From Vitrella brassicaformis CCMP3155 (taxonomy: Eukaryota; Protista; Chromerida), in assembly GCA_001179505.1 (NCBI GenBank), contig CDMY01000658.1:1-35628 (forward strand): a stretch of DNA of 35,628 nucleotides. Reading direction: 5' to 3'. Every line of letters begins with the position of its first letter. Positions within the stretch are counted from its first letter, which is position 1. This document shows, one piece after another, positions 1 to 24,019 of the stretch. The notes beneath the pieces are model-generated. The model was not told where the DNA came from, did no database searches, and was given only the letters and a program-made list of their open reading frames with translations. Made by a program: the position numbers and the translations under genes.

Positions 1-160
1 GCAACGTAAGGTCTGTGGATTTTGTGGAGAGTCCATGTAGGACATGTAGTATGCGTCAGTCCATCCTGTCTGACGTCCTGTCCGCCATGGCCTGTCTCAT
101 GGAACGGACAAAGACTCAACAGCCGTCCTGTCTCACAGATCAGTGGATCGTCGGTCTATG

Positions 161-180
161 AACCCTAGACCCTAAACCCT
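161..180. promoter_or_regulatory. Interstitial telomere-like motif (AACCCTAGACCCTAAACCCT) upstream of gene 1; telo-box-like
   Basis: Seen directly. It combines CCCTAGA and CCCTAAA, the reverse complements of the two repeat variants in the terminal array, about 230 nt upstream of the ATG at 410. The regulatory role is inferred by analogy to plant telo-boxes. Confidence 0.45.
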
Positions 181-271
181 GGACCGACTTGCACTTCTGA
201 CAGGTTTTTGCTTGTGACTGAGGTCATCTGCGCCTCGTCATCGCCGTCACAGCGAGCTCCTATCCTGGAAG

Positions 272-349
272 GTGAGCAGCACACAGATCTGTGAGCAGCA
301 TGCTTGATGGACACAATCCTCTGTCTGTCGGCTCTGTCGCTCTGTGCAG
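272..349 (+). repeat. Putative 5'-UTR intron, near-identical to the intron at 19525-19598 (minus strand)
   Basis: AAG|GTGAGC...CTCTGTGCAG|CCT, 78 nt. By manual alignment it differs from the other copy by 2 substitutions and one 4-nt indel. Confidence 0.85.
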
Positions 350-409
350 CCTCTCTCTCGTCGACCACCGCCTCACTCATCTGACCGTCTTGGCCCATCT
401 GGACATCCC

Positions 410-1792
410 ATGCAGCACCACGAGCAGCAGCAGCAGCAGCACCCCGTGTCATACCTGTGTGTGGGCCGGAGGAGCCGCTACCTCCTCGGCGTCAAGGACG
501 TCGTGCGGCTGAGGGCCACCTGCACCTGGCTCAGAGAGCTCTTCGGAGCGGCCCAGCTGAGAGATCGGCTCCGCCACTCGCTGGACTCACAGGCGGGGCT
601 GCGGCGGGCGAATGTGAATGGGCAGCAAGTGCAGCTGCTGCGGTTCGACGACGACCAGTTCGACGCACATGATCTGCTGGCGGCTGTGTGCGTGGTGGAG
701 GAGGGGGACTGGGGCGGCGAGATGGGCGACGTGATTGAGCTGGCGGGGCAGTGCGGCAACTGTGAGCTGCCTGTGCCCCTCAGTGGGGCTGACATCAACA
801 CACACGCAAACATAACGGTGAGCCGGCAAACAGACGGGCGGGGAGGGGACAAAGAGAGAGGGCCTCATTCTCTCTGTGTGTCTGTGATCCGTGTGTATGC
901 GTATGTGTCGGCTCCCCGTGTGTTGGCGCAGCTCAAGATGGTCGGCCCCCACGTCCACTTCAGTGACGGCAGCTGCCTGCAGCTGTTCTAGCACGGCAAT
1001 CAGTGGCGGGCCATCATCGACGAGCCCAACTTTGAGCTGGAGCTCGACCCGCCCCTCCCTGCCGGCCATCTGTTCCAGCAGCACCGGCAGCCACACGACC
1101 CACCAGTGCGCAACCGCATCTTCTACTCGACCGTCCGTGCCCGATGGCTATGGAGCGGTGGTCTGGGGTGCACCGATAAGTCAGTGTCGTCGTTTGCCAA
1201 GTACAAGATCCTCGACCAGTTCCGCAAGACTCACTCACACCAGGATATCAACTGCATGAGTGCAGTGCTCAACAGGTAACACAACAACAGGATAACTGGG
1301 GTGGGCCACGGTGTTGGTGTCTGTCTGTTGAGGGATGTCGGTGGGGGCCGTCTGAACCGCCTGCTCACCCAGTCGCCTCACACACCGGTGGCCGGCTGCA
1401 CGACCACACTCGGCTCGGATGCATATGGGGGCAGCCGATGGCTGGTGCTCACTGACGGCAGCCACCCTTTCGTCGCCTGGATTAACATCTGGGATCGAGC
1501 GGGCAACACCGGTCAGAAATGACAGAGAGGAAGGGAGTGCTGCTGGTCAAATGTCGCGTCTTCTCGTCTCATTGTGTGCAGTGATTGCGTATGTCTACAC
1601 CACAGAGGCGGCTGTGTGCGAGAGTGGTGCCTTCAAGAACCGCTTCCCGGTGACCACTCAGTTGGCTCGCGTGGCGTTGGGGGCGGTGGCGCCGTTCGTA
1701 TTCGACGGACAACTGCCACAGCAGCAGCAACAGCAAGATGACGACAGCGACGATGGTACAGACACCCACACACATGGATGGAAGAACTGCCT

Positions 1793-1836
<44 letters not shown>

Positions 1837-2018
1837 GTATGTGCAGATTCGGACGGCGGCGATGAGATTGTCGACGGTGTGGATGACGGTAGCGGAGGTA
1901 CACAGCAGCACAAACCACAGAGGCCCCCACGTCGACCTGCGTCACATTCATGTGTGTGTGTGTGTGTGTGCGATGGGCAGGTGAGAGTGGCGCAGCTGAG
2001 GCGGAGGGCGGCGGCTGA
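410..2018 (+). pseudogene. Lineage-expanded hypothetical protein family member (Vitrella-type) with acidic C-terminal tail; probable pseudogene
   Basis: Manual exons: 410-817, 899-1275, 1333-1511, 1582-1755, 1847-1897, 1981-2018 (ends ...AAEAEGGG*). In-frame TAG at 989-991 (LQLF*HGNQWRAIIDEP). The intron-1 acceptor reads TAT (896-898) instead of TAG. The frame otherwise continues with consistent splice phases. Family assignment is from memory of motifs such as RFDDDQ..LLAAVCVVEEG and RFPVTTQLARVALG, not from a search. Confidence 0.7.
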
Positions 2019-2961
2019 CCGATCCATCAGCCAACACGCACTGGTGGGTGTGCAGCGATACATCCCCTCTGTCAGCATGTGCCTGAGTGCCGCCCTGCCC
2101 TCTGTGTGTGTGTTTGTTGCCAGGAGGGCATCTCAAGTTGGGTGCTGGCTGTCGTCATTCATCTGTCGCCGATCGGTTTGTTCTTCAGGACACATCGCCC
2201 ACCACTCCCTCACTGTGTGGACCAGCTGCTGCTGCTGTGTGACCCAATGGCTGGCTGCCTGTGGCTGTGGGTGTGAGTGCCTGTGGTCCGCTGCCGGCCG
2301 ATTTTGATGTGACGCCCCGGCCGATGTGTGATTGTGTTTGGCTGGCTGCCTGGCTGACTCACCTGCCGGCCATATCTCTCTCTCGAGGTGACTGTGTGGT
2401 GGAGTGTGTCTGCCGGTGTGTGCCGCGGGTGACGGCCGTGGAGTGACTGAGTTGACTTGGTGAATTGCTCTCACACACAAATGGCCCGGCCCCTCCGGCC
2501 CGCCACACAGACACACAGAGATGCTGCCGACACCATTGACCAGACAGACAGACGACACCATTGACAGAGACGCTGCACTGCGGCAATTTTATAAGGCGTC
2601 CCACCACAGCCCCACTCGTCAATGACAAGAGGCCACTCTCTCTCTGTTGACATGGCCGTCTGAGCGTCTGTGTCAGTGGTCGTCTGTGTGTGTACTGGAT
2701 GTGACACACAAGCCCCGGCAGCCGGGGGGGGGGGGGCAAAGGCCAACGGGGCCAATCGGACAGGACTGCTGAGCTGCGTTGAGTGTGGCTGCTCGCAGGG
2801 ACAGATCGACCGAGTCCCATTCCGTGTGTCGCAGAGGTTTGTTTATTTGCTGTTTGTGCCTTGTCTTAGCTGTTGAGTCACTCACGAATACATAAACACC
2901 CACCCAAATGAGCCGTACCGTCCCATTCATTCATTCACGCGTCTGTCTATCTGTCTGTGAG

Positions 2962-3520
2962 ATGCTCGAGGGCCACCGCACACAGAGAGTGAGGATCATC
3001 ACTCATTGTGTTTCATAACCACCGAGCACGTCACAGTCAGCACACCGATACACAATGCACACCAAAGCAAACCAAACAGATCAACCGATCTCTCTCTCTT
3101 CTTCCCTAAACGTCCATTCACCAGCGCACCACTCGCGTGTCAGTGTCGAAATGAGATCATCACACTGTCGTGTGTGTGTGCATTTCCCTCTGTGTGCATC
3201 TCTGTCGCCGCCCGGCAACCCCAAAGCACCGACCCCACACACGGGCTGATACTCTTGGGTTGCCGTTGGCAGTGATATGCCCACAAAGGGAGAGGGACGA
3301 CACACACATAGAGACAGACGGGCCAGGGAGGCGAAAGCCACGACGGCGACATACACATGGCCGTCAGCTGAAAGTGGCACAGAGGCACATCCAGACAGCA
3401 GTGTGTGTCTGTGTCAGTGTGTCCACCGCACCCCCCTCTCTCTCTCTCTGTTGTGTGCATCTCAGCAGCCGCCGGCAATCGAAGAGCGACAACACAGTCA
3501 CATGCTGACACTCTAGGGTT
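2962..3520 (+). repeat. Dispersed composite repeat, copy A; homologous to 22930-23750 in inverted orientation
   Basis: Shared blocks such as GGCCACCGCACACAGAGAGTGAGGAT, ACAGTCAGCACACC..CACAATGCACACCAAAG and GTCGCCGCCCGGCAACCCCAAAGCACCGAC occur as reverse complements at 22930-23750. Confidence 0.8.
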
Positions 3521-4060
3521 GCCTGACGATCACGAAGATGCACACAAAGGGACAGACAGGGTGGACACACTCAGCAAAACGACGAACCACGATCAGCTTT
3601 TCTGTCTCTCTCTGGGGTGTAGGCCGGTCTGTCTGTCTCTGAGCCGCCCGTGTGTGACGGATGCACCGACGAGAGATCAACACACTCTCGCGAACACACG
3701 TCACAGACGGCGAGGACACAGACAGACGGCAGCCCAGACACCACCCCACACAGCGATTCTCTGTGCAGCCAATCAGCCAATCGTCCCCTTCTCTCTCTGT
3801 CTGTCTGTCTGTCTGTCATATTTCCCCGCCCCCCAGCCGCCGGCCCACACACTCACGGCAGCAGACAGACGGCCCACACGCAAAACCACACACAGTCCAC
3901 ACAGAGAGAAAAGGCCGACCAACACACGACAGCCGTCCCCTCACACACACACACACACACACAGACAGACAGACAGAGAGGGAGTCCGTCGACTCATCGG
4001 CCGATCATCATGCCTCCCACACACAAATGGATCCACACACACACACACACACTCAGACGA

Positions 4061-18766: not shown

Positions 18767-19459
18767 TCACGCATCAACGATCTGCACTCTCGCCGTGCTC
18801 CCTATCCCACTACTATCAATGCCGGTTGTCCTGACATCCTTCCAGAGGCTCTCCTCGGGTGGCAGTACCTTGTGGAAATGGCTGACGATCATGTCTTCCA
18901 ACAGCAGCCTCTCCCTGCTGTTGGTGATGATCGATTCTGCACAATCGGCTGCCTCAGGGCCCATGTAAGTGCCGGCCTCCCGAAGAACCGCACAGTAGTC
19001 GTGCTCTTCCCCGTCGGCAATGATTTCGACAACCATCTTGGCTAGCTGCTGCATCACCTCCCCCTTCGGGCGCTCAGGCAGCCGGATGGCCTCTTTGCCG
19101 ATGTTGATGCCGAAGTAGCGGAATTCGCGCAGCAGCGCCTCCTTGTTGACCGATGCCTCCACGTGAATGGGCAGGCCGTGGTGGTAGAACTGCATGATGT
19201 AGGGAAACAGGGAGGGCTCAGCATCGACGAAGACCTGACTCTCACAACACCACACAAGCGCTTCGGCCTGTCACAGACCTGTAGCTTCTACCTTTCTGCA
19301 CGTGTGTCCTACCGGCAGGTCATGTTGGATGCGCCGATACTCGGCAGTGTGCTCGTTGGTGACCAGCTGCCCCAGCAGTGTTTGTGGGTGCCGCTCAATG
19401 GTCGTCCTGGCCACGTGGAACATTCTGCCGCCGACATCGAGTCGAATGGGAGTCGTCAT
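18767..19459 (-). CDS. BTB/POZ (T1/KCTD-type tetramerisation domain) protein, 204 aa
   Basis: Exons 19459-19313 and 19234-18767, GT-AG intron 19312-19235. MTTPIRLDVGGRMFHVARTTIERHPQTLLGQL...VFVDAEPSLFPYIMQFY...ALLREFRYFGI matches the KCTD BTB consensus (LNVGG..F.T...TL...P.T.L; F.DRDP..F..IL.FY; L..EA.FYG). Confidence 0.9.
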
Positions 19460-19524
19460 TACGACACGCACTCACACTTGCAACACGACAGACAGCAGGG
19501 CCAATGTGAATGCAGCTGAGAAGG

Positions 19525-19598
19525 CTGCACAGAGCGACAGAGCCGACAGAGGATCATGTCCATCAAGCATGCTGCTCACAGATCTGTGTGCTGCTCAC
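19525..19598 (-). repeat. Putative 5'-UTR intron of the BTB gene, near-identical to 272-349
   Basis: On the minus strand GAG|GTGAGCAGCACACAGATCTGTGAGCAGCATGCTTGATGGACA...CTCTGTGCAG|CCT, 74 nt, ending 65 nt upstream of the ATG. Confidence 0.85.
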
Positions 19599-19711
19599 CT
19601 CGTTCGATGCTCAGATGGACAGATCAGACAATGGCTCGAGTGATTCATTTGGCCGTTCTCTCGGCCGAATGTGCTGCGCAGAGCTGCCCAACCACCCCAC
19701 AAAGCGCCGCG

Positions 19712-19787
19712 CCTAAACCCTAAACCCTGTGATGGTTCTCACAGCGCCCCATCACAGGGTTCAGGGTTTGAAACCCTACCCTAACCC
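19712..19787. promoter_or_regulatory. Telomere-like motif cluster upstream of the BTB gene, including a head-to-head arrangement
   Basis: CCTAAACCCTAAACCCT at 19712-19728 and AGGGTTCAGGGTTTGAAACCCTACCCTAACCC at 19756-19787. Function is inferred. Confidence 0.5.
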
Positions 19788-19964
19788 GTCAGGTCCCGCG
19801 TCAGAAGCGTGGGTGACAAATGGGTGGCAATCTAACCATCTAGCTACCTGGCTGCACAAACCTACGAACAAATGTCAAGTCTCCGATACATACGCAACTG
19901 CGACAAATGGGCGGACAGAGAAGCGGCCATATGATGTATATGGATCTATCCATCTATTTTTTAC

Positions 19965-22913: not shown

Positions 22914-22929
22914 CCCCCTTTCGACAGAG

Positions 22930-23750
22930 CATCAGCCCATGTGTGGTGTCGGTGCTTTGGGGTTGCCGGGCGGCGACACAGATGCCCACAGCGGGGGTTG
23001 TCGAATGCATGCAGAATGGACACACACACTGCTGCTTCCCCATCCCACACTGTGGACGTCTCCGTCTGTGTGTCATGACTGTACATGGCAGCGAATGTGT
23101 CCCTCTGTACTGTACACCCACACACATGGATGTGTGCCGTTCTGTGTCTCTCTCTGTGGTGTGGGTGGGTGGCCAATGCATTCGCAAATAAATGGACGCT
23201 GGATGTGTCTGTGCGGGAGAGAGTGAGGGAGAGAGAGGTCTCTTTGCTTCGGTTGCTGTGTGTGGGAAGGAGAGAGAAATCCGAGGGCTCTGTTTGCTTC
23301 CCTTTGGTGGGCACCGTGTGTCGGTGTGCTGACTGTTGTGGTCTCGTAGGCAATCTCACCCAGTGAGTGTTCATCCTCACTCTCTGTGTGCGGTGGCCGT
23401 CGAGCGGCTGACAGACAGACACTGTCCACACGCACGTCACATGGCCACAAAGGAAGTAAAGACAGCCGATTGCTGCTGGTGGGGCATATGAATTGGATGA
23501 ATTTCCTCCCTCTCTGTCTGTCTGGTTTGTCGTTTTCCTCCTGTCTTTCTCTCATTTGGGTGAAAAGAAGAGAGAGAGAAATACCGGATCGCGCGGCGGT
23601 TTAGTGGAAGAGACTCTGGGAGGGGCTTGTTTGCTTCGCTTTGGTGTGCATTGTGTGTTGGTGTGCTGACTGTCATGAGCTCGAAGGCCATCTATCTGAC
23701 ACAGTGAGTGTTGATCTTCGCTCTCTGTGTGCGGTGGCCGTCGAGGAGAT
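22930..23750 (-). repeat. Dispersed composite repeat, copy B, with an internally duplicated subunit (about 23280-23410 and 23620-23750)
   Basis: Reverse complement matches 2962-3275. The subunit CTCTCTGTGTGCGGTGGCCGTCGAG occurs twice. Confidence 0.8.
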
Positions 23751-24019
23751 CACAGACAGACTGACACACAAGCGGATGGATGCTCATTCAACACACGTGT
23801 TGACGAGGCGGAACAGACTTACTCTCATTCCCACAGATGCGTCATGTCATGTCAGTACGTGTGAGTGCGCACATTCACAACTCGGCAGACACACATTCAT
23901 CCGTCATTCCAGCACAGCACCCCTCTCTGTCTTCTCGTACCAGCCTCTGCATCACATGATGCAGTCAGGCCTCCAGCCCACACACCATATGCTATGATAC
24001 ACACACATACATTCATCGG

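Follow-up and report, generated by a model that had tools for sequence, protein, structure and literature searches.

Subtelomeres are known for ectopic recombination, and the var genes have conserved upstream regions and a conserved intron. Vitrella is the closest photosynthetic relative of Apicomplexa. To our knowledge, the published introner screens cover the introns of coding sequences (CDS) only, so that cassettes in 5' untranslated regions (UTRs) fall outside them. Introners, which are short introns recurring in unrelated genes, are known in Micromonas, Aureococcus, fungi, dinoflagellates and Amoebophrya (PMC9860276, PMC7789003). The main false positive of introner screens is formed by the similar introns of paralogous gene families, in which the similarity extends beyond the intron, and the var genes are the clearest case of this kind (Gozashti et al. 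2022, PMC9860276).

The intron analyzed here is like the var intron class of Plasmodium in that many near-identical introns are located at a homologous position in a fast-evolving subtelomeric family and in that the similarity runs into the flanks. As in the var class, exon evolution is so rapid that certain pairs seem to match exactly up to the borders of the intron. The Vitrella intron is unlike the var class in that it is located in the 5' UTR and not between coding exons, is tied to a leader of 21-28 nt, and also heads a few non-homologous genes. It is like introners in that a short GT..AG intron recurs in more than one unrelated gene, and some introner families also possess neither target-site duplications (TSDs) nor terminal inverted repeats (TIRs). 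Unlike introners, it is present in tens of copies and not in hundreds or thousands, and these copies are mostly paralogous; no copy in CDS, no TSD, no TIR and no case of presence/absence was found in our searches. Furthermore, the unit common to unrelated genes exceeds the intron and leaves exon sequence behind.

We think it probable that this unit is a conserved 5'-UTR cassette, composed of a leader and an intron, of a subtelomeric multigene family. Gene duplication would account for most of its spread, and recombination would have patched it onto a few unrelated genes. With a length of about 120 nt, the cassette would comprise the last 21-28 nt of an upstream non-coding exon, a spliceosomal intron of 74-78 nt, and about 16 nt of the next exon.

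The window, that is, the whole stretch of DNA that was analyzed, is the entire contig CDMY01000658.1 (C658; 35,628 nt) of Vitrella brassicaformis CCMP3155. Two copies of the intron are located in it, copy A and copy B (Table 1). The sequence-only reading of this DNA had reported that the two introns match over essentially their whole length, and our alignment reproduced this: the full-length alignment shows 2 substitutions and one 4-nt indel (CTGT). The identity begins 2 nt 5' of the GT and stops 3 nt 3' of the AG, and no alignment was obtained between the flanks of copy A and those of copy B. One 42-nt piece of the intron is present exactly 2 times in the window, against 0 expected from 100 shuffles. 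As to the internal structure that had been described, GTGAGCAGCA does occur twice in the intron, 19 nt apart, and AGCATGCT is also present, but the inverted repeat that the two GTGAGCAGCA units flank is imperfect. A search of the intron ends found neither a TSD nor a TIR, in agreement with the sequence-only reading, and the same search of the cassette ends was also empty. The two hosts had been described as a gene of a lineage-specific family and a BTB gene. Pfam identified the latter as BTB_2, and the coding exon of the former has no match in Pfam.

Table 1. Features of the window, listed by position in the 35,628-nt contig.
Feature	Positions	Strand	Basis
Contig-end repeat (telomere-associated), degenerate CCCTAAA units	1..203	.	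Genome matches near contig ends
Copy A upstream flank, putative first exon, not the family leader	204..271	+	Relative found for 215-271 only
Full homology block with other family loci (duplicated gene unit)	270..2557	+	blastn against 10-kb loci
Intron copy A, 78 nt, GT..AG, variant A type I with CTGT insertion	272..349	+	Alignment, genome BLAST, pattern search
Exon 2 5'-UTR of family gene, type I	350..409	+	Common to most type I copies
First coding exon of family gene, 136 codons, weakly F-box-like	410..817	+	Six-frame matches in genome
BTB coding exon 2	18770..19234	-	Pfam BTB_2, E 6.8e-6, profile 44-87
BTB coding exon 1, 49 codons	19313..19459	-	Pfam BTB_2, E 2.4e-6, profile 1-37
BTB exon 2 5'-UTR	19460..19524	-	72-75% identity to BTB paralogs, with a deletion relative to them; homology resumes here
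Intron copy B, 74 nt, variant A type I	19525..19598	-	Alignment; leader and intron near family copies
28-nt leader of copy B, upstream exon end, identical to family leader	19599..19626	-	21-mer search
Cluster of telomere-like AAACCCT/AGGGTTT motifs, candidate promoter element	19711..19788	.	Read from sequence
Terminal (TTTAGGG)15 telomere array	35521..35628	+	Tandem Repeats Finder

We then counted the copies of the intron in the genome of Vitrella itself (72,700,666 bases in 1064 contigs). BLAST with the 78-mer gave 40 scored matches, each of which spanned positions 1-78. In the pattern search at up to 3 mismatches, the 3' half of the intron was found in 46 copies and the 5' half in 33, and the reversed pattern, used as a control, in 0. 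The intron is therefore not restricted to the two copies in the window: besides these 46 copies (variant A), there are 7 diverged copies of 74 nt (variant B), whose introns are about 55-60% identical to variant A. The total is about 54 copies, that is, tens and not hundreds. The 21-mer of the leader is present once in the window; with up to 2 mismatches allowed, the genome has 40 occurrences of it and 0 of the reversed control.

No larger diverged superfamily was detected with degenerate patterns, composed either of the splice sites and the core of the intron or of the leader, the 5' splice site and the core; these patterns returned the known copies only, and so did the leader search at up to 2 mismatches. 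In the BLAST and pattern searches there were no free-standing copies, no copies in CDS and no copies lacking a leader-type upstream exon. The tally of UTR against CDS positions placed all copies in a 5'-UTR context and 0 in coding sequence. The spliced junction of exon 1 and exon 2, which a processed retrocopy would possess, was absent from the genome, so that no sign of splicing was obtained in this way. All copies were found with the intron or the leader as the query, so the finding that the patches always hold the whole intron is partly an effect of the search.

In order to see how far the homology extends, we compared the loci side by side, at first with 30 copies and then with all 46. Most of them possess in common a 28-nt leader beginning TGATCTGTCC and also the downstream exon past its ATGCAG start codon, and nearly every copy is accompanied by the conserved 21-28-nt end of the leader exon. 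The pairwise HSPs that span the intron typically cover about 450 nt, and at most 1.1-1.5 kb, on its upstream side; on its downstream side they cover 1.4-1.5 kb, which was the limit of the loci used. When the window was compared by blastn with 10-kb loci (10 loci), the stretch from position 270 to about 2250-2557 was matched at 73-87% identity. On both comparisons together, typical copies are homologous over 1.4-2.3 kb downstream. Over most pairs, the homology ranges from 28 to 1500 nt upstream and from 19 to 1500 nt downstream of the intron. Thus homology through both flanking UTR exons and about 2.2 kb of the gene is present at most other loci, and the absence of related flanks is true of the A/B pair only: the downstream flank of copy A (350 to about 2557) recurs in dozens of other copies, and so do the upstream 28-30 nt of copy B. 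The pair of loci L011 and L016 likewise has the intron alone in common. The sharing that is exact at the boundaries, which had been regarded as the hallmark of introners, is seen in these few pairs only, and most pairs are homologous into the flanks.

About 40 of the 46 variant A copies sit 30-100 nt upstream of a coding exon of the family, at the same place in the 5' UTR, and only about 5-9 copies are in other genes. When a maximum-likelihood tree was built from the coding exon, one clade (support 100/96) contained 23 of the 24 intact copies that bear the cassette. The presence of the cassette requires 3 changes on this tree, compared with a mean of 12.9 in shuffles, and the family members outside the clade have different 5' ends. 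The confinement of 23 of 24 copies to one clade of host genes indicates that the cassette was multiplied by gene duplication. We suppose that this clade belongs to a very large, fast-evolving and partly subtelomeric family and that most of the 46 copies would have arisen by duplication of whole genes.

The coding exon that follows copy A has at least 150 six-frame matches in the same genome (304 candidates), with identities from 92 to 38%. Only weak signs of an F-box-like nature were obtained for this family: 4 of 21 members matched F-box-like PF12937 (best E 0.0055), and matches of ESM features to F-box clusters scored only 0.85 and 0.81. The PDB profile search with the family exon was empty, and the AlphaFold model of the exon had a pLDDT of 39.8 and was unusable. 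In these searches, multi-exon genes were searched exon by exon and not as a joined model.

Reading the sequence from the leader into exon 2, we found that all three frames are closed before the ATG, and the cassette is therefore 5' UTR. In typical genes of the family, an internal exon of about 100 nt appears to end in the leader. Upstream of this exon there seems to be a further GT..AG intron, which measures about 147 nt and abounds in CTGT repeats, and telomere-like GGGTTT motifs are found still further upstream. This arrangement bears on a likeness to the spliced-leader RNA genes of dinoflagellates and perkinsids and to relict leaders, in which a short 5' leader, a GT and an intron-like part of about 75 nt also head different mRNAs. 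In contrast to the spliced-leader RNA, every Vitrella copy then continues in cis through a polypyrimidine tract and an AG into the gene, the leader is the end of the internal exon just described in typical family genes, and there are no tandem arrays or free-standing copies. The Rfam scan of window positions 150-450 returned nothing at E up to 1.

The setting of these genes is at least partly subtelomeric. The (TTTAGGG)15 array at the right end of the window indicates that the contig reaches a chromosome end. Arrays of (CCCTAAA)4 at contig ends gave 366 matches in the genome, against 0 for the control, and on four contigs (C539, C374, C542 and C571) copies of the family are found at distances of 0.8-4.3 kb from (CCCTAAA)n arrays. 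For 36 variant A copies the length of the contig is known, and 15 of these are within 6 kb of a contig end, where 7.8% would be expected on those contigs and at most 17.6% genome-wide; this enrichment is possibly inflated, since assemblies break at repeats.

The left end of the window belongs to the same setting. Window positions 1-149 have at least 116 candidate matches in the genome at 98-100% identity, and positions 150-203 have 85 candidates. These matches are mostly located 20-430 nt from contig starts on the plus strand, or near contig ends on the minus strand, and point inward. The 5' splice site of copy A is only about 68 nt inside the inner edge of this repeat. Within the 68 nt, only positions 215-271 (57 nt) have a relative, at 89.5% identity, and this is located upstream of the same intron in a PALP gene on contig C303. 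We also considered these 68 nt as a diverged form of the family leader and rejected this, because the local alignment was not significant (239 of 2000 shuffles scored as well). The nearest relative of copy A is L012 (C302:119196), with 0 mismatches in the intron, and this sister copy retains the last 17 nt of the leader. The identity of the two introns, together with the remnant of the leader in L012, indicates that the upstream side of copy A was replaced recently. That is, copy A would have lost the family leader after its split from the sister copy.

Copy B possesses the family leader but not the exon 2 of the family. The BTB_2 domain of its host is split across two exons, and two close paralogs of this gene, on C562 and C302, have a leader identical at 21 of 21 positions and a 74-nt intron at the same site, which is of variant B. 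Among the three genes the identity of the CDS is 0.80-0.88 (84% between the C562 and C302 paralogs). The identity of the intron is 0.95 between the two paralogs but 0.55-0.59 between the window gene and either of them. The leader and intron of copy B are instead only 1-3 mismatches from type I copies of the family; over 102 nt, copy B is 97-99% identical to family copies, compared with a divergence of 12-20% in the BTB coding exons. The start of exon 2 in the window gene is still variant B-like. The discordance of intron and CDS, together with the closeness of copy B to the family copies, suggests a patch of short length that was made by recombination. Most simply, the BTB gene would already have possessed an older, diverged cassette of variant B, and a family-type tract of about 100 nt, bounded by the leader and the 3' splice site, would have overwritten it. 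For such a tract, the upstream anchor is good (the 21/21 leader), but the downstream anchor, the similarity of the 3' splice sites over about 8 nt, is short, and this speaks against the proposed conversion. In the genome searches made with the intron and the leader, no match to the cassette was obtained at the more distant BTB paralogs, which are located at C1064:53826, C561:31471, C475:63134 and C403:12266 and, three of them, on C158.

The pair in the window would thus look exact at its boundaries because of two independent events, that is, the loss of the leader at copy A and the overwriting at the BTB gene. A multigene family in which flanks were replaced twice, independently, can produce a signature that looks like that of a textbook introner; one window of 35 kb showed sharing exact at the boundaries, and the wider genome gives a different explanation.

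Signs of exchange were also found among the family members. L065 and L072 have an exon-2 UTR of type I, or a mosaic of types I and II, joined to a type II-like coding exon, and the sub-variants of the intron occur across coding clades. In the four-gamete test, 40.6% of the informative site pairs failed, and the PHI-type permutation test was marginal (p 0.04). We suppose that stretches of 100-250 nt, including the intron, have been exchanged among family members in regions prone to recombination, and that the same stretches may have been copied onto the BTB gene, two PALP genes and a trypsin-like gene, some of which are nearby on the same contigs. The process is likely to have been ectopic gene conversion or templated repair. 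The mosaics, the short tracts of high identity in diverged sequence, the discordant phylogenies and the location near telomeres are like the ectopic gene conversion of subtelomeric families. Unlike the usual ectopic conversion, the tract in Vitrella is a non-coding leader plus intron and crosses between non-homologous genes, which needs either a pre-existing cassette or a templated insertion.

We next consider the hosts outside the family, on which the main rival depends. As judged by Pfam, variant A also heads the C303 PALP gene, which is cysteine-synthase-like, and, on C310, a trypsin-like gene. Variant B heads both BTB paralogs and, on C302, another PALP gene, which is distantly related to the first and of which the N-terminus was read; its 4 further copies, at C249:42477, C302:29294, C302:51869 and C617:21796, precede other genes, and the identity of the host was read for 3 of the 7 copies. 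Among the carriers of the cassette there are thus at least 4-5 unrelated gene lineages. Swaps between existing cassettes can be explained by conversion but the first acquisitions cannot, and for the trypsin-like gene and the C303 PALP gene we found no evidence of a pre-existing cassette. A portable 5'-UTR module of about 120 nt, which entered at least 5 unrelated gene lineages either as a mobile element or by templated repair from the subtelomeric family, is therefore the main rival that we keep, although we consider it doubtful. Such a module would be tolerated only in UTRs, with about 44 nt left after splicing, and its GCATGC core might serve as a shared regulatory element.

In its stricter form, which we regard as unlikely, this rival holds that the cassette is, or formerly was, a small non-autonomous mobile element that inserted into transcribed 5' regions and brought its own splice sites, introner-like but restricted to 5' UTRs, and that the family copies represent one insertion amplified by gene duplication. 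Since splicing would remove only 74 of the about 120 nt, the element would be tolerated in UTRs only. The range of unrelated hosts agrees with this, namely a BTB_2 gene, two PALP genes that are distant from each other, the trypsin-like gene and at least 3-4 further genes. Between unrelated hosts of variant B, moreover, the homology runs from the first base of the leader to about 16 nt past the intron, so that the common unit is leader, intron and about 16 nt; variants A and B have the same limits, and the family-type patch in the BTB gene of the window is leader plus intron only. Nor is the lack of TSDs and TIRs decisive, as many introner families are without them (PMC9860276), though it remains a point against a mobile element. 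The limits of homology to the family, however, differ by host: they are -30/+3 for the BTB gene, -57/+19 for the PALP gene on C303 and -106/+50 for the trypsin-like one. Of the only about 54 copies, about 40 are explained by the duplication of one family; the three close BTB paralogs all have the cassette at the site, so that no empty site is seen; and neither a free-standing copy nor a copy in CDS was found. It had also been suggested that a family restricted to 5' UTRs could act as a mobile expression module. This suggestion was supported in part: besides the family genes, the BTB gene, two PALP genes and a trypsin-like gene have the leader and intron in their 5' UTRs, and the cassette diverges less than synonymous sites do.

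The degree of conservation bears on a second rival, which dispenses with exchange. In 30 intact copies, the mean p-distance was 0.088 for the intron, 0.094 for non-synonymous sites, 0.123 for the 28-nt leader, 0.158 for synonymous sites, 0.205 for the exon-2 UTR and 0.253 for the upstream positions -60..-29. In close pairs, the intron diverges like synonymous sites (0.066 vs 0.070), and in distant pairs it plateaus near 0.10 while the synonymous distance climbs to 0.33. This plateau fits homogenisation, constraint or both, and we think that the intron and the leader may be held more similar than synonymous sites in any of these ways. Between variants A and B, which are about 40% diverged elsewhere, the parts kept are mainly the leader, AG|GTGAG, a 13-nt core GCAGCATGCTTGA, TGTGCAG and the length of 74 nt. 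Such a pattern is what would be expected of a real, spliced intron with a constrained internal motif.

From these values one might propose that the cassette is an ancient regulatory element of the 5' UTR, kept by vertical descent and purifying selection, and that it was relaxed in the two BTB paralogs. The intron is indeed less diverged than synonymous sites, the invariant core and the 21-nt leader are kept across variants otherwise about 40% diverged, and palindromes of the GCATGC type are ApiAP2 motifs, which is a lead only. We nevertheless judge this proposal improbable. Strong constraint should prevent the intron of close pairs from diverging as fast as synonymous sites, which it does. Vertical descent also leaves the near identity of copy B to the family amid diverged BTB exons unaccounted for, as well as the 95% identity of the C562 and C302 introns despite a CDS identity of 84%, and unrelated genes cannot inherit a common cassette. 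The classical introner, in which the intron alone is mobile and creates new introns in unrelated genes, is very improbable, because, apart from the exact boundaries of the window pair and the intron-only likeness of L011 and L016, each member of those pairs has one flank in common with other copies, the homology at most other loci reaches about 450 nt upstream and about 2.2 kb downstream within one host clade, the copies are few and dominated by paralogs, and there is no leader-less copy, none outside the 5' UTR or in CDS, and no TSD or TIR.

We prefer, for these reasons, the reading of a family cassette spread by duplication and patched onto other genes by recombination. Vitrella possesses a fast-evolving, partly subtelomeric family of at least 150 members in which a UTR intron and its leader are kept above the level of synonymous sites, which parallels the upstream regions and the intron of the var genes. 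If a function is confirmed, the cassette may help in the study of co-regulation, or of how the chromosome ends of chromerids recombine.

The possibility of a structured RNA, or of a host of a snoRNA or miRNA, was considered separately and rejected. When both copies, variant B and the entire cassette were folded as RNA, the result was no better than with shuffles (z 0.15 to 1.49). About half of the copies have the 12-nt palindrome in a broken form, which is GATCAATG in type II. A complementarity of 8 bp between the leader and the intron is absent in type II and in variant B, and we treated it as chance.

The candidate for a constrained element is the invariant GCAGCATGCTTGA core, which may have a regulatory role. 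Palindromes of the GCATGC type are described as binding motifs of ApiAP2 proteins in apicomplexans (PMC2965767, PMC4117751), and the resemblance of the core to an ApiAP2-type motif might serve as a lead only.

Finally, telomere-like motifs were observed upstream of several copies. The cluster near copy B is about 110-190 nt upstream of its 5' splice site, and similar clusters are found upstream of the cassette or gene at L040, L041, L031 and L060. In copy B, the C303 PALP gene and the trypsin-like gene, the clusters are about 100 nt upstream of the 5' splice site, and in these three genes the leader is probably located in the first exon.

In the weakly F-box-like gene family that accounts for most copies of the 5'-UTR cassette (leader, intron and start of the next exon), the first coding exon is disrupted by in-frame stop codons or frameshifts in several copies (L008, L010, L019, L027, L043 and L063). 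The pN/pS value among the intact copies was about 0.6. Many members of this family are pseudogenes, or are under relaxed or diversifying selection.

The positions of the features described here are listed in the table. Contig C302 (128.7 kb) holds eight cassettes, of which four have the variant A intron and four the diverged variant B. Two of the latter lie head to head with about 250 nt between them, and this arrangement looks like a bidirectional promoter region.

Coordinates of cassettes, repeats and associated features (L numbers, extracted loci of the Vitrella genome)
Feature	Sequence	Position	Strand	Remark
Cassettes	C302	522, 29274, 43441, 51853, 52219, 72690, 112970, 119196		head-to-head pair: 51853 (-), 52219 (+)
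Telomere array (TTTAGGG)15	window	35521-35628		right end of whole 35.6-kb contig
203-nt repeat	window	1-203		left contig end; at least 116 near-identical candidates in genome
Telomere-type repeats	C571 (G000, own genome)	265866-265921		
Telomere-like cluster	window	19711-19788		
Telomere-like cluster	L040	1096-1140		
Telomere-like cluster	L041	8862-8895		
Telomere-like cluster	L031	2086-2125		
Family-associated repeat	window	2920-3899	+	
Family-associated repeat	window	22925-24005	-	
Upstream region of family gene	L031 (C802)	129-1470		
Trypsin-like gene	L040 (C310)	1373-2500		downstream of cassette
Upstream ORF	L031	2450-2512		equivalent region in L002-L024

A host gene outside the family was found on C310, where the reading frame of the trypsin-like gene runs on for at least 376 codons with no intervening intron, whereas the Vitrella genome is otherwise intron-rich. 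It may have originated as a retrocopy or by gene acquisition, having landed in a 5' UTR of the family type.

The leader forms the end of an exon that contains a short conserved upstream ORF, which consists of ATGGCGGCCTCCTCATCTGCCGCTG followed by a GGT microsatellite and stops at a TGA within the leader itself. Clusters of the telomere-like motif AAACCCT/AGGGTTT were also observed. In several genes they lie about 70-200 nt ahead of the first splice donor or the start codon, and their motifs frequently form the palindrome GGGTTTCAAACCCT. These clusters may represent a telo-box-like core promoter element of the Vitrella genome. A second recurrent motif, TGCGAGCT, frequently in the form ATTTGCGAGCTC, was seen upstream in L047, L048, L053, L061, L077, L014 and L027; it is located a short distance ahead of the 5' UTR in several genes, both family and non-family.

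Two segments of the window align at 76-92% identity to the upstream region of the C802 family gene, and they are a further dispersed element, either a repeat or a fragment of a gene, that moves together with the family.

With regard to the contig ends, the near-identical candidates of the 203-nt repeat mostly point inward and lie 20-430 nt from the ends of other contigs; in this the repeat resembles telomere-associated sequences. The window contig could correspond to a very small chromosome or to the end of a chromosome arm. On C571, the telomere-type repeats lie about 0.8 kb ahead of the family copy at 266716, with family coding sequence to either side (261838 and 266388). They are either an interstitial telomere array or two chromosome ends joined in the scaffold.

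The GC content of the window falls to 0.43-0.46 in 1-kb bins at about 9-10, 12-13 and 17-18 kb, and ORF translations starting in or crossing the latter two bins contain long runs of X. These low-GC bins are probably assembly gaps (N runs) and not true shifts in composition.
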